Positions 4,267 to 55,196 of a stretch of 64,000 nt of DNA are shown here, piece after piece. Both the position numbers and the translations under genes were made by a program. Location: the IMG/VR virus record IMGVR_UViG_3300034073_003340, positions 1 to 64,000 of that record; one strand, given 5' to 3'. The notes under the pieces were generated by a model, which made no database searches, was not told where the DNA came from, and saw only the letters and a program-made list of their open reading frames with translations. How positions within the stretch are numbered: the first letter of the stretch is position 1; the number at the start of each line of letters is the position of its first letter.

Positions 4267-6177
4267 TTAATCGAAGGTCTTTACAGACAGCTTCTTGGTT
4301 GGAGAAACACCGTGTTTAGACATCATATCAACGACCATTTCATAGTTGTTGATAAGATCAAGGGAGGTGAAACTAGCAATCACCTTTCCAGGACGATATT
4401 TGCTTCCGGTAGAGGTCTGAGTAACACAAGTAACTGGTGTCCCATTAGGAGTTCTGCTTAGCCCAGTTACATAGTTGAGACCCTTCTTTCCATTACGATC
4501 AATTTCTAGAACAGTTACACCAGCCCTGCTGCTACCGCTACTCATATCATCAAAATATTGTGCGGTTCCATTCTTGATATCTTCCAAACTAGCGTATCCG
4601 CAATCGGTGTTTAGATAGAAAGGCTCTCCGTATTTGGTATGTGGTGACTTGGAATAGTAGAGTTGAACCTCATCCAGATCTGAATTCTTGAATTCGTCCA
4701 ATAAACTCTCAGCCGTTGGTTCCAAACGGTCTAAGCCTTTTTCACGCTTCCAAGCAATGCGATCATGAGCATTGCGCCATTTTGCCACTCTTTTACCTGC
4801 ACCCTTACGCATAATACCCATGCGTTCAGCTTCTTCAGCATCATGGACTAAATCGTCCAGATCGCCCGCTTTCTTCTCATGATGAGCCTTGCTGTCTCGA
4901 GCCTTGGCAGCATAGCGTCCCTTGAGATCACCACTTAGTTCGTTCAGCTCAGTTTCATCAGAAGCCGTTTGGCTTTCACCAAAATCACCACCCATATCAA
5001 AGCCCAACTCTGCACTGGTGTCTTCTCCGTGATCCTCTTCGCGATTATGTCCAAAATAGCCTACGCCATAGATACCATAACCAAACTTTGGGTTATTGGA
5101 CTTCTTGGAAGCTTCCTCGACATAATCACGAAAGCTTTTTGGAGAAACCGACTCTTCTTGATGGAACTGATTGGTGCTGTGATCAACGGCTTCTTGTCTA
5201 ATTCTATCCATTGTCTTTTGATCGATACGATCAATAATGTCTTCACCAGTTGATTTAACCACTACTGCGGTAAGGTCTAGCGTGCCGCCCATGCTAGCAA
5301 CTGGCATGTGATCCAATCCAGTATCAAAGTCTCCTGAGTCCCAATCATAATGAACGGTAACTTCAACTTCGCCCTGTGGGTGAGTCTCATCTTCAATCCA
5401 GGTGTCAAACTCTTCACTGCCACCGGGCTTATAAGGAGATTCAGTAACCTGCTCGGATACATCAACGTCTTCAAAATCCATATCGTTTAGATAGACAATG
5501 GACTTACCGCCCTTGTGGGTTACTAGCCAAACGCCATCTACCATTGAATCAGGCTTTGCGGTGGCACCATCCATATCATGAGTGCTCATGAAATCTAGAA
5601 ACGCGATCGCACCTTCTTCGGTGTCAGGAAACTTAGTCTTCAGCTTGTCTTCAAACGGTCCTTCGGATAGTGGGTTATCGCCTGAACGAGCTGGAACTCT
5701 TTTTGTATCCGGCTGAACTACTGTTCGGCTAGCAATGCCTGCGTATTCCTGAGGATCAGTTTCATTCGTGCGGTAATCATAATTGGCTTCTTCACCAATC
5801 TTTGGATCAACTAGGTCACTACCCATATCCACTTCTTTGGAAGCTGCCTCTGGACCGTTTGGATCAATTGGATCCACCATATGATCATCGTCGCCGTCCG
5901 AATAGCTCATTGCTGCGAACTGTGGTTCCAAGAGATTCATGATAGAACGTAGATCTGGTGAATTGATGGTGGAGGTCATTGTCGCTCCACCCTCTTGAAC
6001 ATCAACGGTCAAAGTAGCTGGACCATTGAAGGCAGCACTATTACCAGCAATGCCTGCGTTCTTGAGAACCTGAGCCAGTTCAGGAATATCAGCCGCTGTA
6101 ATTGTGGTATTTGATGTCATATCACCATTGCTATTGGAGATATTGAGACTCACTGCCTCATCAATCTTCTTAGTCAT
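4267..6177 (-). CDS. Acidic probable head-internal/prohead core polyprotein
   Basis: 636 aa, very acidic, many (I/L/V)xE-S/A sites. The ELSGDLKGRYAAKA motif resembles ELSRDTQMAYAKKA in 44827..46290. Confidence 0.5.
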   Translation of the reverse strand: MTKKIDEAVSLNISNSNGDMTSNTTITAADIPELAQVLKNAGIAGNSAAFNGPATLTVDVQEGGATMTSTINSPDLRSIMNLLEPQFAAMSYSDGDDDHMVDPIDPNGPEAASKEVDMGSDLVDPKIGEEANYDYRTNETDPQEYAGIASRTVVQPDTKRVPARSGDNPLSEGPFEDKLKTKFPDTEEGAIAFLDFMSTHDMDGATAKPDSMVDGVWLVTHKGGKSIVYLNDMDFEDVDVSEQVTESPYKPGGSEEFDTWIEDETHPQGEVEVTVHYDWDSGDFDTGLDHMPVASMGGTLDLTAVVVKSTGEDIIDRIDQKTMDRIRQEAVDHSTNQFHQEESVSPKSFRDYVEEASKKSNNPKFGYGIYGVGYFGHNREEDHGEDTSAELGFDMGGDFGESQTASDETELNELSGDLKGRYAAKARDSKAHHEKKAGDLDDLVHDAEEAERMGIMRKGAGKRVAKWRNAHDRIAWKREKGLDRLEPTAESLLDEFKNSDLDEVQLYYSKSPHTKYGEPFYLNTDCGYASLEDIKNGTAQYFDDMSSGSSRAGVTVLEIDRNGKKGLNYVTGLSRTPNGTPVTCVTQTSTGSKYRPGKVIASFTSLDLINNYEMVVDMMSKHGVSPTKKLSVKTFD

Positions 6178-9393: not shown

Positions 9394-10232
9394 TTATAGA
9401 CGGTTGCCAGGAATCTGCTCAGGAAGCGCGGTCATTAGACCGTTTGCCTGCGTTGCGTTATCAAAACGAACAGTCAACGTAATGGTCTGGAAACCGGATT
9501 CAGCATAGTCCAGATCCATGTAGTCAACGTTCTGTAGGAAGCAACCTTCAAGCGTCCATGTCTCAACGACAGTGTCATTGCCACCGTCCATGGTCTCAAT
9601 AATGGTTACAAACTTATAGTTGATACCAGAAGCAAAAGCCGTCTGCTCAAAGTGGTTGAGCTGCTTCTGTAACTGGTGCCCAACAAGCTTAGCAACGTTG
9701 TTGGTCAAGTCATCCTTGAGAACAATCTGCAAGGTCTCCCACGTATGCTTACCAGCATAGTAGGCGGTGCTGTTGTAACTATGAACAGGAACTTCTTCGT
9801 GGGCAATTTTTGGTTTGCCAACGCTCTGAACCTGCTGGGTGAAGTCGAGACCACCTGCGATTGGACCAAAGTTAACCACGCGGACGCGGAAGCGATACTT
9901 ATACTTGAGTTGGAGAAGACCACCGCGGCCCTGTCCGCCTCCAAGTGGAACCATTTGTATTCAATCAGTGTCGTTAATACTGATCCGCCTTACGGCTGCT
10001 CATTGTTACCAATGAGATTAGACTATATCATGACCCACTTGGGGCCCCACCCGTTTCAGCCCACTTGGGCCTACGACCTTTCGGTCTAGTCGTTGAACGT
10101 TCCGGTTCATAACTCCGGCTTCGCTGCTGATTGTCCCTGAGGGATTTTCCAGCAATTAGAGTGGTTTTTCGACCAGGATCACTCCTGGAAGCAGCTATTC
10201 CTTTAACCGAACTTAGATAGAGTTTCTGCCAT
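9394..10232 (-). CDS. Tail tube protein (T4 gp19-like), spliced: exon 1 10232-10206, exon 2 9951-9394 (194 aa)
   Basis: GGAGG RBS plus ATG GCA GAA ACT CTA TCT AAG TTC GGT (MAETLSKFG) joins in frame to GTT CCA CTT (VPLGGGQGRGGLLQ...KYRFRV). Also YYAGKHTW and W-x-L-x-GCF tube motifs. Confidence 0.92.
9952..10205 (-). mobile_element. Group I intron (subgroup IA-like, 254 nt, no internal ORF)
   Basis: P AATTGCTGGAAA, Q AATCAGCAG, R GTTCAACGACTA, S ATGATATAGTCT. Exon-terminal U pairs with G in P1 (CGGU|UA with UAGCUG). P10 GGAAU pairs with exon 2 GUUCC. P3 CCACTC/GGGTGG. P7.1 GACC-GAAA-GGTC and P7.2 GCCC-AAGT-GGGC. Terminal omega-G. Confidence 0.95.
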
Positions 10233-10329: not shown

Positions 10330-11142
10330 ATGTATTACGTTTATACCTTGTGTGATCCAAGAAGAGATGACCAACCATTTTATGTTGGCAAGGGATCACG
10401 AGACCGATGTAAGTCCCATCTATATGAAACGTATCAGAATACGAGCAATCGCCGCAAGTGGTGTAAGATAGCTGCTATTAAGAAGTCCGGGCTTGAAGTT
10501 ACTATCAAAAAGATTCAAGAGGATTTATCAGAGTCTGATGCTTATGATCTGGAAGAAGAATTAATCAAGAAGTACGGTAGAATAGGCTATGAATCCAATG
10601 GCATCTTAACCAACATATGTGAATCTTCTCGTCCTCCCTCTGCTAAAGGAAGAATGATATCAGATGAAACTCGTAGAAAGCATAGTGAACGCCAAAAAGG
10701 TCCACTAAATCATAGATATGGTATCAAGATGTCAGATGAGGAAAAGGAATATAGGCGTCGATTTAATTTAGAAAATGGTATCAGACCGCCTGATAGGACA
10801 GGGGTTTCCCACACTGAAGAGACCAAAATCAAGATGAGTCTAGCCAGCAAAGGTAAGAAGAAAAGCCCTGAGCATTGTAAGGCGATTGGTGAAGCTCGTC
10901 GTGGAAAATCTCTAGGACCATGTTCCAATGAGAAAGCCAAGAAAATAGCAGAATCACAGTATAGAAACTATCAGCTTACTAGCCCTGAAGGTAAAAATTA
11001 CACAGTGAACACAAGTAAACTAAGAGAGATGATAAAGATATTCAATTGGTCATATGGGGGAATCATGGCAGCTAAAATTGCTGGGAGAAAATATCGAGGT
11101 TGGACTATTTTAGATCTGGGACGATCTAAAATACCAGATTAA
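10330..11142 (+). CDS. Free-standing GIY-YIG-type homing endonuclease with NUMOD3-like repeats
   Basis: YYVY...PFYVGKG...R...H catalytic module and basic GxxxSxETxxKxS repeats. Opposite strand to its neighbours. Confidence 0.85.
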   Translation: MYYVYTLCDPRRDDQPFYVGKGSRDRCKSHLYETYQNTSNRRKWCKIAAIKKSGLEVTIKKIQEDLSESDAYDLEEELIKKYGRIGYESNGILTNICESSRPPSAKGRMISDETRRKHSERQKGPLNHRYGIKMSDEEKEYRRRFNLENGIRPPDRTGVSHTEETKIKMSLASKGKKKSPEHCKAIGEARRGKSLGPCSNEKAKKIAESQYRNYQLTSPEGKNYTVNTSKLREMIKIFNWSYGGIMAAKIAGRKYRGWTILDLGRSKIPD

Positions 11143-15562: not shown

Positions 15563-15604
15563 ACTCTATTTAAGCATAGATTTGGAATCTTGTCAACTCA
15601 ATGG

Positions 15605-16425
15605 TTGTCGGGTAGCACGAACTCTACCCGACGAGGCTCCACCACCATATAGGTATTGGATAAAAGTAAAGGTCTCGTTCGTGAGACCACCCCTGCGTCA
15701 TCAACAACATGGCACTTTGGACCGCAAGGTCCGAAGAGCAAGTAACGAGGTGGACCGGGCTAGTGTATTGAGATCGAAATCTTAATACCTATATCTCCCT
15801 AAGCAGACCGAAGCCTGTTTCCATGTTGTTGAGTCAGCGTGTTAGGTTACTTTCTAGTAAGATAACCCACCATCATCGGCTCTCGATCTATTTATTTGGG
15901 GGTCTCCGGAGACCGAAGTCTCCGGAGGGCAAGTTGACTAGGTCTTTCCAGCGCCAACTTGCGGGGCTTGATAAATCAGATACTTGGTCTGATCACACCT
16001 ACTGAGTCCTATGCCTTTCAGACCCAACGCGTCTAGGGGAAGTTACTCAAGGCCCCCATGTTTCCGATCAAGGTAGTTAAGGAGGAACCAAATCTAGGCC
16101 TTATGACCGAAGCCCGCCTATCCTCTTTATTCGTTTTAATAGCGTTGGTGACACTATTTAAACTACTAAACCTCACCGTCGCACGCTAGGATGAGGGTGA
16201 GGGGTGATCCTTCCCTCAACATAACTACCATGTGGGACCGAAATCCCAGATCACTAGGGACACTCGCAAGCGCCCCGTCGCACTTTACCAGGTCGATTCC
16301 TGGACTTTTGTTCTCCTCCGGTGCCGTCCGGCAGATACCTTTATGTGTCAGCACACACCCCAGTCGCCAAGAACAAAATATATGGGTTCAAGAGCCTAGG
16401 CTCCTCCGTGCCGTTTAACCGTTGT
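15605..16425 (-). ncRNA. Large structured non-coding region, possibly three tandem ~250-280 nt RNAs
   Basis: No credible ORF. Five UUCG-capped hairpins, G-U pairs that only work on the minus strand, a 12-bp and an 11-bp long-range helix in pseudoknot order, and internal TAAATA motifs at 16155-16160 and 15889-15894. Confidence 0.7.
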
Positions 16426-16464
16426 ATATTAGATCCTTTTGAATCGCAATATTCTATTCATGGA

Positions 16465-16492
16465 AATGGAGAGAGTTTTACCTCTCTCCATT
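16465..16492 (-). terminator. Hairpin terminator after tail sheath
   Basis: AATGGAGAGAG / CTCTCTCCATT 11-bp stem just after the sheath stop. Confidence 0.7.
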
Positions 16493-16495
16493 CTC

Positions 16496-49204: not shown

Positions 49205-49239
49205 CTGGCGCCTTTGCGGATAAACTCCAGATATTTAGC

Positions 49240-52587: not shown

Positions 52588-52811
52588 GGCTCTTGGGAAC
52601 TCCACCTGAAGATGTTCCAATGATTCTTCAGGAATATGTAGACGACGCAAGAGCCTTAGAAAATCAGCTTATACAGATTGCGTTTTATATGAGAGGTGGT
52701 TGCCCTCTTGATCAAGCTTATAAGCTAACGAATCGTCAGAGAAAGAACACTCTGAAGTTCATTGAAGAAAATATCGAGAGAACAAACAAGACCGGGGTCA
52801 TGATGCACTAA
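52582..52811 (+). CDS. Small gp51-like chaperone domain, possibly expressed by -1 frameshift from the gp26-like gene
   Basis: Open -1 frame across T TTT TTC at 52575-52581; I-x-FYMRGG...AY...QR...FI-x-EN motif. Confidence 0.55.
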
Positions 52812-53188
52812 AGAGTTCCATGCTCTAGAAAAATTCCGGCCAGATTGGAGTCACGACGAACATGACAAAGCTCAAGATCAAGACCCTGAGAGACCTCCTT
52901 GAATTGTTTGAACAAGTCGATAAGCAATTGGTTATTGATCTTCCAAAGACCAGAAGCTTGATTGATGACCAATTGACTGTCACCAAAAATGACAGCCTTT
53001 TGGATGCCATTGTCTTTGGCCCAAATAACCGCCCAGACCAAAGCTGACCATTCAGCGATATTATTGGTTCCCTGACCCAGGTCCTTCATCGTAAGGGCTT
53101 GAGGCTTTTCCCCATCCCTGCATATAACAATACAGCTAGACATCTTTCCTGGGTTTGGGGAACAACCACCATCAAAATATATGTTCAT
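52808..53188 (-). CDS. rnhA: Ribonuclease HI-family protein
   Basis: FDGGCSPNPG, TNNIAEWSAL, GDSQLVINQ...W and HV-x-R-x-x-N. Confidence 0.88.
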   Translation of the reverse strand: MNIYFDGGCSPNPGKMSSCIVICRDGEKPQALTMKDLGQGTNNIAEWSALVWAVIWAKDNGIQKAVIFGDSQLVINQASGLWKINNQLLIDLFKQFKEVSQGLDLELCHVRRDSNLAGIFLEHGTL

Positions 53189-53244
53189 TCACCAATTTAG
53201 CTTATCTGAATCCTCGGTGTCAATCAGTCGCAGATATTCCAAAC

Positions 53245-54060
53245 CTCTTTGGGCTATTAGCCCATAACGTTCACCTCGAACTTACGTTCGAGGACTAAGG
53301 TGTTTCATTTAGCTTTCTTCGCTTACGCTCATTCGCTAATTCAACACCTTAGTGAGGACATTGTTCAATGCTGTTCTGAAAAACTAGATTTATCATCAAT
53401 CAACATCACCAATTGCCAGAACTTTAACGACATATCAATTACTCAGGACGAATTAATTGATAACAAGTAACTGAGCTTTCTGGCATGCCAGAAAGTGAAG
53501 TAGGACTTGCGTTGCGAAGCTAGCAAGGCCTCTTAACCTTAATGGATAATCGATCAATTCATTCAGTCACACTGACTTCCCCCGTCTCCGGGAGAAGTTC
53601 AAAAAATGAATGAAATCTACAATTTTAGGGATTCACACAATATGACTGGCGTGGACAGTTCAGAGGATCCTAGGTCTGCCATTATATCCTGCACCTTTTC
53701 AGTGCTCACTGCCGCTTCTGTGTAATCGGTCTCCAGCTGGAGTACCTTTCCACACAGGACGGTCGGTAGTTCGTTACGCTACCACTCAACATCTCCATTG
53801 CTCACGCCAGCGGCTCCGGAGACTTGCTCGTTTCTTTTCAAAACGAGTCTAGTCTTTGACTAGGGCGTCCCACTCTTTGGAGAGCGAGGGACCTGCCTAG
53901 ATTTCCAGGACGTTGCCGAAGCCATCTCCAGATCCATTCTAGATCCGTTGAAGTTCCTCTGGGGTTTAGCACGTAGCCACTTTCCCAGCCCATGGTCGCC
54001 GCCCAATACAGCGCTCTCCGGGGGTTCGAGGGCATGATCTGCGCCTCCACTGCCTTATCT
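53245..54060 (-). ncRNA. Large ornate structured non-coding region (ncRNA and/or replication origin candidate)
   Basis: No credible ORF. Nested hairpins capped by GUAA, GAGA, GAAA and C(UUCG)G loops on the minus strand, with G-U pairs favouring minus. Perfect 20-bp palindrome at 53476-53495. Confidence 0.65.
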
Positions 54061-54190
54061 TTCTCACACTTCAGCTTCCAAAAACTGATAAATAAGTATG
54101 TAAAGGACGGGTATGTTATTGGGTGTGTTTTTAGCTCAATAATAAATTACAAGGTGTCGTGGTAGTCCCAGGTGACCGTTCTTAGTGTAT

Positions 54191-54240
54191 GGGCCCCGGT
54201 TGGAACTTCTAGTTCCTCCGGGGCTCTTTGTTTTTGTTTT
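54191..54240 (+). terminator. Plus-strand intrinsic terminator within the non-coding region
   Basis: GGGCCCCGG...CCGGGGCTC stem followed by TTTGTTTTTGTTTT. Confidence 0.7.
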
Positions 54241-54368
54241 GTGTTCAAGAGCTATAAAGTAGAATCTGTAACTATCCTCTTGTGGGATATTTAGTACACA
54301 GATCAGACCGTTTCTACGGCCTCGATTCAGCTACATCTGATAATCGATCTGAGGAGAATGTTGGTCTC

Positions 54369-55196
54369 TCATTCAAAACATCTCCTATTCGTATTCATCA
54401 TAATAGATGTTTTGATCATAGGAGCATTCGTATACTCTAGATAGTATGGTACCTGGCTATGCTTTATGTCAACAAACCAGGATTCTTTTTCTTCATTGGA
54501 TTGATAATGGAGTATAGCCATATTCCAGCGACGATCAGACGCTAGATCATATCCATCAACTTTTACCGGTGTTTTACTATATGGTGTATAGATATGGGTT
54601 TGATCTAGATCACTGAGATACTCAATTCTCGATAGTGCCATTCTGGGCATCTGGAGACAGCTTCGGTGATTTAAATCACACTCTCCCAATAGGTTGATTG
54701 GCTTAGAAAGTTTGTCTTTTTTCATGAACTTGGAGGCCTGGATTCTATAGAAATCCAAGAATACTCTCGCCATGCTCTTTCTAATCTGAGGGTCAATCCT
54801 GGTCTCTTTAGCAGCCAGGTTAAGAGTGTATAAAATACTCTCATTCAGAAACCGCTGGCCCAGAACGTTTCTACCTAGCAACATCCTCCGGTGTGGTTCC
54901 AAATGTTCAGGTAGAGAGATATCTTCAGATGCGTTTAAAAATGGAGTAATGGACGTTCCATACTCAGCCAAAGTTTCCCAAAGTCTTGTCCAATCCTTAT
55001 GAAGAGAAAGCAAAACAGTAGGATTGGTTCGAACTTTGGAACTCAGCCCAGATACTAAATGATTGTGATAGTAGAGTTCCTCTTTTATGAACCCTTTGAA
55101 GCAAGTCTTGTCAGCAAAAGCTAGATTAATCATAATTCTCAAATCACGAAATTTAGCGTTCACATTCAACTCCTTTCTGATATCAACATGCGGCAA
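54369..55196 (-). CDS. Hypothetical protein resembling the WED/REC half of TnpB/Cas12f, lacking RuvC
   Basis: By-eye register with TnpB: INL...YYHNHLV ~ LYP...FVYNHFL; HIYTPYSKTPVKV ~ LKLPKLGWVK; WNMAILH ~ LNVTVRR; SWFVDIK ~ HYEASV. The ORF ends before any RuvC-I Asp. Confidence 0.4.
   Translation of the reverse strand: MPHVDIRKELNVNAKFRDLRIMINLAFADKTCFKGFIKEELYYHNHLVSGLSSKVRTNPTVLLSLHKDWTRLWETLAEYGTSITPFLNASEDISLPEHLEPHRRMLLGRNVLGQRFLNESILYTLNLAAKETRIDPQIRKSMARVFLDFYRIQASKFMKKDKLSKPINLLGECDLNHRSCLQMPRMALSRIEYLSDLDQTHIYTPYSKTPVKVDGYDLASDRRWNMAILHYQSNEEKESWFVDIKHSQVPYYLEYTNAPMIKTSIMMNTNRRCFE

Follow-up and report, generated by a model that had tools for sequence, protein, structure and literature searches.

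A conserved gene-free region upstream of an RNase H-like gene in a giant T4-like phage encodes a large, intricately folded non-coding RNA with an EGFOA-related domain, as inferred from comparative sequence analysis

The region studied lies in a window of 64,000 nucleotides (positions 1 to 64,000 of IMG/VR record IMGVR_UViG_3300034073_003340) from a T4-like phage with a 436-kb genome. A stretch of 1,180 nt without protein genes (53189-54368), the longest gene-free stretch without tRNA genes in this genome, is located between a gene for a 275-aa protein and a minus-strand gene for a type-1 RNase H-like protein of 126 aa (52808-53188). The latter was identified through matches to Pfam RVT_3 (1.5e-10) and RNase_H (4.8e-7) and to PHROG 'Rnase H' (3.4e-16); its best solved relative was Sulfolobus tokodaii RNase HI (E about 3e-12), and the D/E/D/D-bearing motifs align. 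On the contrary, a search for relatives through the 275-aa protein found none, and comparisons with Pfam, PHROGs, PDB sequences and the ESM Atlas revealed no function for it. A sigma-70-like match (TTGACA-18-TAAATT, 53223-53194, minus strand), whose −35 and −10 positions are kept in the homologues, lies directly upstream of the RNase H-like gene and marks the probable downstream limit of the RNA unit. This match supports the claim of the first-pass annotation that RNase H has its own promoter.

That annotation, made from the sequence alone, had described a non-coding element of about 800 nt (53245-54060) with dense minus-strand structure and no credible ORF, and this observation was confirmed. 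All the features listed were found on the minus strand: CTTCTCCCG-GAGA-CGGGGGAAG at 53597-53576, CCTCGAAC-GTAA-GTTCGAGG at 53293-53274, GC-TTCG-GC at 53922-53915, CTCGTTT-TGAAAAG-AAACGAG at 53847-53827, CTGTGT...ACACAG at 53757-53718, and the 20-bp palindrome CTTTCTGGCATGCCAGAAAG at 53495-53476. Three points had to be corrected. The conserved element is larger, running from about 54350 to about 53250 with its first covarying helix at 54100-54065; the CTGTGT/ACACAG helix is kept in only 4 of the 7 homologues; and the palindrome, as read from the alignment, is a hairpin whose sequence differs between homologues while the pairing is kept, and is therefore an RNA stem and not a DNA site. The minus-strand core (546 nt) folded at −200.3 kcal/mol (z = −4.73), and 0 of 100 shuffles folded as well, whereas the plus strand gave −164.5 kcal/mol (z = −2.32), 36 kcal/mol less than the minus strand. 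GNRA and UUCG loops appear only on the minus strand. All six frames carry TAA, TAG and TGA, and the longest open stretch was of 102 codons, or 169 with one stop type read through.

A hidden gene using a recoded stop codon, a self-splicing intron or a mobile-element RNA could be considered, since the window holds a group I intron elsewhere and the genome has two tRNAs with a CUA anticodon, with TAG being rare as a stop. However, no Rfam intron, ribozyme or IS-guide family matched the region even at E = 10, there are no flanking exon halves and no transposase or endonuclease ORF inside, the flanking genes are intact and separate, and the substitution pattern is pair-compensating, not codon-like. 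Together with the stop codons described above, these results effectively refute this reading.

To determine whether the region is conserved, homologous loci were sought. A blastn search of public phage genomes in distant mode gave no match to the stretch, but it was found conserved in six other contigs, five of them viral (159-465 kb) and one a short metagenome contig, with the same gene order where the flanks are held. Four of the seven records, counting the window's own, are complete or nearly complete genomes of 417-465 kb. The RNase H-like gene sits beside the element in every homologue whose downstream flank is held (6 of 7, counting the window; it was not recovered in the short locus L011), although it is a syntenic neighbour not shown to be part of the system. 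The nucleotide identity of the core to the window was 98.8, 88.8, 79.7, 73.6, 76.4 and 77.7% in the six homologues, in comparison with 82.7, 81.1, 76.1, 75.6, not available and 63.8% for the RNase H gene and 50-63% for the 275-aa gene, indicating a conservation that matches or exceeds that of the former and clearly exceeds that of the latter. An nhmmer search with the core profile found no paralogue in the phage's own genome and no further members among 90 fetched loci. Additional scans of viral sequences with three other invariant motifs returned only the same contigs plus one isolated look-alike hairpin (locus L094), and a scan of genome contigs gave only two canonical EGFOAs and no member of the large family.

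We then examined covariation in the 580-nt core (54100-53573). RNAalifold gave 138 pairs, 46 of them compensated. A curated set of 120 base pairs was 97.5% canonical, and 45 of them showed compensatory double changes, against 4-13 in slid controls and 23±2.5 in shuffles (0 of 500 shuffles reached this value). G·U cells outnumbered A·C cells 71 to 6, indicating that the RNA is the minus strand. It has to be noted that these values rest on 7 related sequences (about 5 independent lineages), so that some covariation may be inflated by shared ancestry. A long-range closing helix proposed by RNAalifold (alignment columns 69-74 with 501-506) was rejected because it pairs in 34 of 42 cells, whereas the local outer helix of the EGFOA-like domain pairs in 42 of 42.

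The first covarying hairpin of the core, H0 (54065-54100), has 7 bp with 4 compensated and a 24-nt loop that holds the invariant UAUUUAUC and a UUGG that can pair with the CCAA loop of H7 (54081-54077 with 53881-53877). In this loop-loop pairing 32 of 35 cells are paired and 2 pairs are compensated, including a G-to-A change matched by C-to-U in homologue L013. The 5' domain (53907-54047, helices H2-H6) includes the invariant GCAGAUCAUGCC hairpin and a variable-length insertion hairpin inside H4, with 3 of 5 pairs compensated in H4, 4 of 4 in H5 and 5 of 7 in H6. The middle domain (53787-53897, helices H7-H10) includes the invariant CUAGUC-AAA-GACUAG hairpin and the CUCGUUUU/GAAACGAG hairpin; its 40 pairs are 99.2% paired and 14 are compensated, a level reached by 0 of 500 shuffles, with 0-3 in slid controls. 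It is followed by the EGFOA-like domain (53652-53794), which comprises hairpin H11, a P1 with an inserted hairpin H13, an outer helix (53713-53708 with 53659-53654), and hairpins H14 and H15 carrying the AUAAUGGCAGACCUAGG loop. A pseudoknot, PK1 (53645-53811), is formed by GCUGGCGUG in the loop of H10 (53811-53803) and CACGCCAGU directly 3' of the EGFOA outer helix (53653-53645); its 9 bp are paired in 63 of 63 cells, but with only one covarying position (C-G to U-A in homologue L014) its support is moderate. A near-invariant G+C-rich GNRA hairpin (53573-53601; CUUCUCCCG-GNNA-CGGGGGAAG), followed by AGUCAGUGUGRCUG, comes next, with 83 of 84 cells paired, loops of GAGA, GAAA and GGAA, and no covariation. 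Further downstream, a faster-evolving 3' peripheral domain (53251-53572) holds the GAGGCCUU/AAGUCCU helix, the 53495-53476 hairpin, which changes sequence but keeps its pairing in homologues L002, L003 and L014, the CUAAGGUGU/ACACCUUAG helix (53352-53295), the GUAA hairpin at 53293-53274, and GGGCUAAUAGCCC at 53263-53251. In this domain RNAalifold gave 29 pairs, 8 of them compensated.

Comparison with Rfam revealed that positions 53794-53652 score 35.9 bits against EGFOA (RF02955; Weinberg et al. 2017, PMC5737381), just under the gathering cut-off of 37.7 bits, and the six homologues score 34.8-37.5 bits; the shortfall is small and consistent. The conserved CCGUC and AGACCU-GG nucleotides of the family are invariant in all 7 sequences, although the loop reads AUAAUGGC where the family consensus reads GUAAAGCU, and a sequence pattern built on them retrieved canonical EGFOAs scoring 44-69 bits, some of them on phage contigs. 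A model built from our domain (R2) found in return other EGFOA-pattern loci at E values from 6e-10 to 5e-4, including locus L009, which scores 61.6 bits with Rfam; these loci were, however, chosen with a pattern that covers 22 nt of the motif. In a joint alignment of the 7 sequences with 6 other EGFOA-pattern loci (one, L009, confirmed above Rfam's cut-off), the three-way junction formed by an outer helix and two hairpins, the second with a large loop holding the conserved AGACCU-GG, with CCGUC upstream, is kept, with 98.5% of cells paired and 22 of 31 pairs compensated (outer helix 6 of 6, hairpins 4 of 5 and 4 of 5), and 0 of 500 shuffles reached this value. The setting is also shared, since EGFOA is known for lying in unusually long gene-free regions (preprint 10.64898/2026.07.01.735769) and the other EGFOA loci have gaps of 0.5-1.6 kb. 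RF02956, checked as a possible EGFOA-associated family, is unrelated.

On the other hand, the domain differs from EGFOA, described as an sRNA of about 110 nt, in its two inserted hairpins (H11 and H13), in the pseudoknot tying its 3' flank to an upstream hairpin, and in being one domain of a conserved RNA of 580 to about 1,000 nt. The other domains were not found at 77 other loci fetched with the EGFOA pattern (at least 12 of them confirmed EGFOAs), and a model of the middle domain (R1) found it only in the 7 homologues. The region might be read as a cluster of separate short elements (an EGFOA sRNA, terminators, protein-binding hairpins) that only look like one large element because the phages are closely related. 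Similarity between distant canonical EGFOA loci stops at the roughly 100-nt motif, and contigs from RNA-labelled libraries (see below) are short and patchy. Against this reading, PK1 across about 150 nt and the H0-H7 contact across about 200 nt tie the domains together, each with compensatory change, conservation is continuous across 580 nt, and no promoter- or terminator-like sites were found inside the core on the minus strand. We consider this alternative unlikely, although transcript ends are inferred here from motifs only.

Regarding other RNA families, the 53594-53410 stretch showed a weak local resemblance to the 5' part of the model of manA (RF01745), a phage-borne RNA class that self-assembles. 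The score was of 20.7 bits against a cut-off of 55.2, in the window only, and none of the six homologues matched at E of 1 or less, so we treat it as chance. GOLLD (RF02032) did not match within 52700-54700 at E of 10 or less, but a copy is present elsewhere in the same genome (299655-300084; 164.1 bits) and GOLLD was found in all three complete or nearly complete relatives. GOLLD and ROOL (Weinberg et al. 2009; Kretsch et al. 2025, PMC12286853) resemble the element in size class (0.6-1 kb), in their many covarying helices, pseudoknots and tetraloops, and in being carried by phages with unknown function. There is, however, no sequence or model similarity, and the element is not next to the tRNA array.

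To get insight into the possible transcription of the element, we analyzed its upstream region. A small hairpin (54323-54346, minus strand; CGAU/UCAG stem, AUGUAG loop), near-invariant in the 7 homologues with 2 pairs compensated, lies just after the 275-aa ORF; as it is upstream of the promoter-like motif, its belonging to the RNA is uncertain. This late-promoter-like motif, ACTAAATA (54288-54295, minus strand), points into the element with an inferred start near 54281, and sits in the same alignment column in all 7 homologues, reading TATAAATA in L013 and L014. TAAATA occurs 137 times in the genome against about 519 expected, and 55 of these lie within 60 nt upstream of ORFs of at least 100 aa, where about 4% would be expected, with a logo of [AG][CA]TAAATA. 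On the plus strand, an invariant GATAAATA (54087-54094), 5 of whose 9 occurrences in the genome lie upstream of ORFs, is followed by about 140 nt of mostly variable sequence and by an intrinsic terminator (54191-54241), a G+C-rich hairpin with a 1x2 internal loop and a T-run. Motif, terminator and a spacing of 127-165 nt are found in all 7 homologues, defining, from motifs only, a candidate cis-antisense small RNA unit (54087-54241) over the leader. Compensatory changes are seen in the terminator hairpin, and its mismatches are A·C when read on the minus strand (5 cells), which are G·U on the plus strand, with no minus-strand G·U cells, indicating that it functions on the plus strand.

Core sequence also appeared in assembled contigs (78-272 nt) of wastewater RNA-labelled libraries, at a depth comparable to the relatives' portal gene. 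Contigs at least 99% identical to the window lie only inside 53627-54047, and the flanks are covered only by relatives under 90% identical. These contigs carry no strand information and could be DNA carry-over or come from relatives, and the pattern does not separate high expression from high conservation. DNA runs from wastewater, soil and marine samples in which relatives are present hold 30-70% of the sampled sequence words.

The position of the element raised the possibility that it is a very long 5' UTR controlling late expression, stability or translation of the RNase H-like gene, as a riboswitch-like or protein-binding leader modulated by the antisense RNA. It lies on the same strand as the gene and directly upstream of it in every homologue whose downstream flank is held, and no intrinsic terminator on the minus strand was found between the core and the gene. 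However, the most conserved part lies 380-900 nt upstream of the start codon, a variable segment of about 300 nt separates the core from it, the stretch next to the gene is the least conserved part, and the conserved sigma-70-like site lies between them. In addition, no relative of this RNase H was found at any other EGFOA-pattern locus fetched, so the EGFOA domain is not tied to such a gene, and a leader of about 1 kb for a 126-aa protein would be without known parallel. We consider this role improbable, in agreement with the first-pass annotation, which held that the element is not simply the RNase H leader.

The same annotation had proposed a large functional RNA or an R-loop-primed origin, and we find this interpretation partly supported: the evidence for the former is strong, whereas the latter has no direct support, although it is not excluded. 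The layout has the same topology as ColE1 RNA II / RNA I, with a long structured RNA, a candidate countertranscript of roughly 140 nt over its 5' leader ending near the long RNA's inferred start, and an RNase HI gene next door, RNase H being involved in ColE1. In this view, the RNA would form a persistent hybrid downstream of the core in the A+T-rich stretch 53300-53500 (G+C falls to 0.365 at 53300-53499), the RNase HI would trim it into a replication primer, and the antisense RNA would set the firing frequency, as RNA I does for RNA II. The antisense-covered leader varies between phages, as specificity regions of countertranscript systems do. On the contrary, cumulative GC skew, the only indirect test, showed no turning point at 53-54 kb, the EGFOA domain is homologous to RNAs at many other loci and none of the fetched loci holds a relative of this RNase H, and the near-invariant loops, the pseudoknot, the tetraloops and the loop-loop contact suggest a compact RNA working as a folded molecule rather than a nascent-strand hybrid. 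The fold is also far more conserved and knotted than RNA II, the setting is a phage and not a plasmid, and the known R-loop origins of T4 (oriF, oriG) use short, unstructured transcripts from middle promoters. An origin at this locus thus remains an unlikely hypothesis.

Altogether, we favor, with moderate confidence, the explanation that the gene-free stretch encodes a multi-domain, pseudoknotted non-coding RNA on the minus strand. The analysis establishes the conserved core at about 54100-53573, within a full unit that is probably about 1 kb (from near 54281 to near 53250), the presence of one domain that is a divergent member of the EGFOA fold, and the restriction of the other domains, among the sequences searched, to this clade of T4-like phages. 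It is by inference, on the other hand, that we propose that the RNA is made late from an ACTAAATA late-type promoter, that it folds into a compact tertiary structure with an H0-H7 loop-loop contact and a 9-bp pseudoknot that clamps the EGFOA domain, and that it acts in trans, most likely as a self-assembling or scaffolding particle. Self-assembly rests purely on analogy with EGFOA, for which RNA-only trimers and dimers were seen by cryo-EM in vitro for other family members (preprint 10.64898/2026.07.01.735769), and with GOLLD. Also inferred is that the roughly 140-nt antisense RNA, with its own late-type promoter and terminator, probably limits or processes the long RNA, although the constant adjacency of an RNase HI gene and an antisense RNA would also fit a primer-RNA or regulatory role. 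A more far-reaching reading, which we regard as tentative, is that EGFOA is not a small RNA here but the conserved assembly module of a new class of roughly 1-kb ornate phage RNA, made late and trimmed or throttled by its own antisense RNA, that would build an RNA-only or RNA-protein particle alongside GOLLD in the same infected cell. By extension, the long gene-free regions around other EGFOAs could also be large, fast-evolving RNAs of this kind.

Very few bacterial or phage non-coding RNAs of this size and complexity are known (GOLLD, ROOL, OLE, and the ribosomal and RNase P RNAs), and each has opened new biology, most recently with the finding that GOLLD, ROOL and OLE form RNA-only homo-oligomeric complexes. 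The element described here would add a roughly 1-kb, pseudoknotted RNA carried by phages with 417-465-kb genomes, and would link the orphan EGFOA motif to a larger architecture, which may explain why EGFOAs sit in long gene-free regions. The conserved antisense unit and the adjacent RNase HI would give concrete handles on its regulation or on a possible role in priming. Furthermore, one phage lineage would carry at least two unrelated giant RNAs, this one and GOLLD, plus a third candidate at 15.5-16.5 kb, making it a natural system for asking what such RNAs do during infection.

The analyzed stretch corresponds to the first 64 kb of a 435,856-bp virus record with direct terminal repeats, and its genes, including a gp20-type portal and a T4 baseplate protein, mark it as T4-like. 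The element under study lies in a region of 1,180 nt (53189-54368) with no ORF of 75 aa or more, located on the minus strand between a 275-aa ORF with no family match and a 126-aa type-1 RNase H-like gene. This is the longest gene-free stretch of the genome that holds no tRNA genes. We first investigated whether the structures listed in the first-pass annotation were real. The observation held, since every hairpin listed was found on the minus strand at its given position. The 546-nt core folds at -200.3 kcal/mol on the minus strand (z = -4.73, with 0 of 100 shuffles as stable), whereas a value of -164.5 kcal/mol (z = -2.32) was obtained for the plus strand. A second gene-free stretch, located at 15563-16495 on the minus strand, also folds exceptionally well (-330.9 kcal/mol, z = -6.3), with several UUCG-capped hairpins and no Rfam match at E of 1 or less. 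This region is presumably the element that the annotation had counted as the first ornate element, and it has no detectable sequence relation to the one studied here.

To elucidate whether the region might conceal a protein-coding gene, the six reading frames were examined. All six frames carry all three stop codons, and reading any one stop through gives at most 169 codons, so that the region is not a gene hidden by recoding, even though the phage has two tRNAs with a CUA (amber-reading) anticodon, at 99130-99204 and 293258-293333 of the genome. It has to be noted that these are two of 59 tRNA genes in the genome, and that TAG ends only 17 of 229 long ORFs, which hints at possible TAG suppression or recoding in part of the genome. 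A group I intron (RF00028, 85.2 bits) was found elsewhere in the window, at 9999-10215 on the minus strand, between ORFs 9394-9954 and 10330-11142. For the element itself, an origin as an intron or a hidden gene was considered very unlikely.

Searches with the RNase H protein and with DNA patterns taken from invariant stretches retrieved six further copies of the element, five of them on IMG/VR viral contigs of 159-465 kb and one on a 3-kb metagenome contig. Where the flanks are present, the order is always the same: 275-aa ORF, gene-free stretch, and RNase H. The nucleotide identity of the RNA core to the window was 98.8, 88.8, 79.7, 73.6, 76.4, and 77.7% for the homologous loci L002, L003, L013, L014, L011, and L073, respectively. 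The corresponding values for the RNase H gene were 82.7, 81.1, 76.1, and 75.6% in L002, L003, L013, and L014, and 63.8% in L073 (L011 not included), whereas those for the 275-aa gene were 62.7, 53.2, 50.4, and 52.0% in L002, L003, L014, and L011 (L013 and L073 not included). The RNA core is thus at least as conserved as the RNase H gene in all comparisons but one, the exception being L014, and is far more conserved than the 275-aa gene in every comparison. No paralogue exists in the genome, and no further member was found among about 90 fetched loci.

Prediction of a consensus structure with RNAalifold on the seven-sequence core alignment yielded 138 pairs, 46 of them with compensatory double changes. 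We curated 24 helices (120 pairs), in which 97.5% of cells are canonical and 45 pairs are compensated. Sliding the partners gave 4-13 compensated pairs and shuffling gave 23±2.5, with 0 of 500 shuffles reaching the observed value. Automated counts on model-fitted alignments agree with this result: the middle domain is 99.2% paired with 14 of 40 pairs compensated, in comparison with 0-3 in slid controls. A scan of all column pairs added two long-range contacts. The first one is a 9-bp pseudoknot (PK1) between the loop of hairpin H10 (53811-53803) and the strand directly 3′ of the EGFOA domain (53653-53645), which pairs in 63 of 63 cells with one compensated pair. The second one is a loop-loop pairing of UUGGA (54081-54077) with UCCAA (53881-53877), with two compensated pairs. 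With only about five independent lineages, single compensations such as the one in PK1 are suggestive rather than proven. On the other hand, the helix used by RNAalifold to close the whole core was discarded, as it pairs less well (34 of 42 cells) than the local EGFOA outer helix (42 of 42). The 3′ part (53572-53250) evolves faster but still holds covarying helices, including the one that the first-pass annotation had described as a palindrome. In the curated helices, G·U cells number 71 and A·C cells 6, and GNRA and UUCG tetraloops appear only when the minus strand is read. These data indicate that the functional RNA is the minus strand.

A hairpin whose loop carries the same 18-nt sequence as H10, GAGCCGCUGGCGUGAGCA, was also found at 5600-5635 (minus strand) of L094, an unrelated, G+C-rich viral contig of 52 kb, with a weaker second copy 160 nt away (5436-5469, minus strand). 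This resemblance may be due to chance or to a shared small module.

To get insight into the identity of the element, the stretch was compared with Rfam. Nothing was found at the gathering cut-offs, but at relaxed thresholds the EGFOA family (RF02955) matched positions 53794-53652 at 35.9 bits, against a cut-off of 37.7, with E = 2.4e-4. All six homologues scored 34.8-37.5 bits at the same place. Furthermore, a covariance model built only from the seven domains finds canonical EGFOAs at other loci, with E down to 6e-10, and in the joint alignment the three helices of the EGFOA junction are kept, with 22 of 31 pairs compensated. The EGFOA fold is therefore present, as a divergent subfamily with two inserted hairpins. 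On the contrary, a model of the middle domain found nothing in 77 other loci fetched with the EGFOA pattern, and between distant canonical EGFOA loci similarity ends at the roughly 100-nt motif. The possibility that the region is a cluster of separate small elements was regarded as unlikely. A weak match to manA (20.7 bits) was not seen in any homologue and was attributed to chance. EGFOA is described in the literature as a putative small RNA that sits in unusually long gene-free regions, and a 2026 preprint reports that two members form an RNA-only trimer and a strand-swapped dimer. On another viral contig (L009, 5050-5503, plus strand), a canonical EGFOA (61.6 bits) lies directly downstream of a tRNA-Leu and a tmRNA-like match, the kind of setting described for GOLLD and ROOL.

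We then searched for signals that might direct transcription of the element. The sequence TAAATA is fourfold depleted in the genome (137 copies against about 519 expected), and 40% of those copies lie within 60 nt upstream of ORFs of at least 100 aa (for example, at 49237, 55229, and 56742 of the window), where 4% would be expected. The logo, [AG][CA]TAAATA, resembles the T4 late promoter, and this looks like the late-promoter element of the phage. One such motif (ACTAAATA, 54295-54288, minus strand) points into the element, and is kept in all homologues, reading TATAAATA in two of them. A second motif (GATAAATA, 54087-54094, plus strand) is invariant in all seven sequences and is followed after 127-165 nt by a hairpin and T-run (54191-54241) that is also present in all seven. 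The mismatches of that hairpin are A·C on the minus strand, which are G·U on the plus strand, indicating that it works on the plus strand. Together, these signals suggest a roughly 140-nt antisense RNA covering the leader of the long RNA, both transcripts being inferred from sequence alone. The statement of the first-pass annotation that RNase H has its own promoter is supported by a sigma-70-like promoter (53223-53194) that is conserved in position, which argues that the RNA unit ends before it; a role of the element as a leader for RNase H appears unlikely.

Words from the core occur in subsurface, wastewater, soil, and marine metagenomes and in RNA-labelled libraries. In four such libraries (two declared metatranscriptomes; one is probably DNA), contigs at least 99% identical to the window fall only within 53627-54047, whereas the 5 kb of flanking sequence is covered only by relatives under 90% identical, at similar depth for the portal gene. 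Contigs 99-100% identical to the core were found in wastewater RNA-labelled libraries, although the window appears to come from a subsurface metagenome. This distribution fits an expressed, highly conserved RNA, but it cannot exclude DNA carry-over, and the contigs carry no strand information. The RNA core is unusually widespread and invariant.

The same phage genome carries a GOLLD RNA (RF02032, 164.1 bits, cut-off 150) at 299655-300084 on the minus strand (locus L095, 356-785), in another gene-free stretch of about 1.1 kb near the tRNA array, and GOLLD matches of 148.8-171.1 bits were found in all three complete or nearly complete relatives. A fourth long gene-free stretch holds a permuted (two-piece type) tmRNA gene at 392220-392585 on the minus strand (locus L096, 821-1186), scoring 89.3 bits with tmRNA_permuted and 76.6 bits with alpha_tmRNA.

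The interpretation of the first-pass annotation, which had proposed a large functional RNA or an R-loop-primed origin, was supported only in part. We are highly confident that this is a real large structured RNA with an EGFOA-type domain; the conserved, covarying fold and its strand are shown by the comparative analysis, whereas late transcription, the antisense RNA, and action in trans are inferred. The main alternative is the origin in its ColE1-like form, whose topology (long RNA, countertranscript, and RNase HI next door) fits. However, GC skew shows no turning point, no relative of this RNase H was found at any other EGFOA-pattern locus, and the fold looks like that of a stable particle, so that we consider this alternative unlikely. 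The explanation that we favor is a trans-acting, late, compactly folded RNA that probably self-assembles or scaffolds, on the basis of the EGFOA homology, the tertiary contacts, conservation that matches or exceeds that of the neighboring RNase H gene, and the presence of GOLLD in the same genome and its matches in the relatives, although its action in trans as an assembling particle is proposed only tentatively. Large ornate phage RNAs and the EGFOA motif are already known. In the literature searched, EGFOA is mentioned in only two papers, and the large IMG/VR survey of structured RNAs reports only motifs of 29-151 nt. Altogether, this roughly 1-kb architecture appears to be undescribed, as do its extra domains, its pseudoknot, its putative antisense partner, and its occurrence together with GOLLD in T4-like phages with genomes of 417-465 kb.
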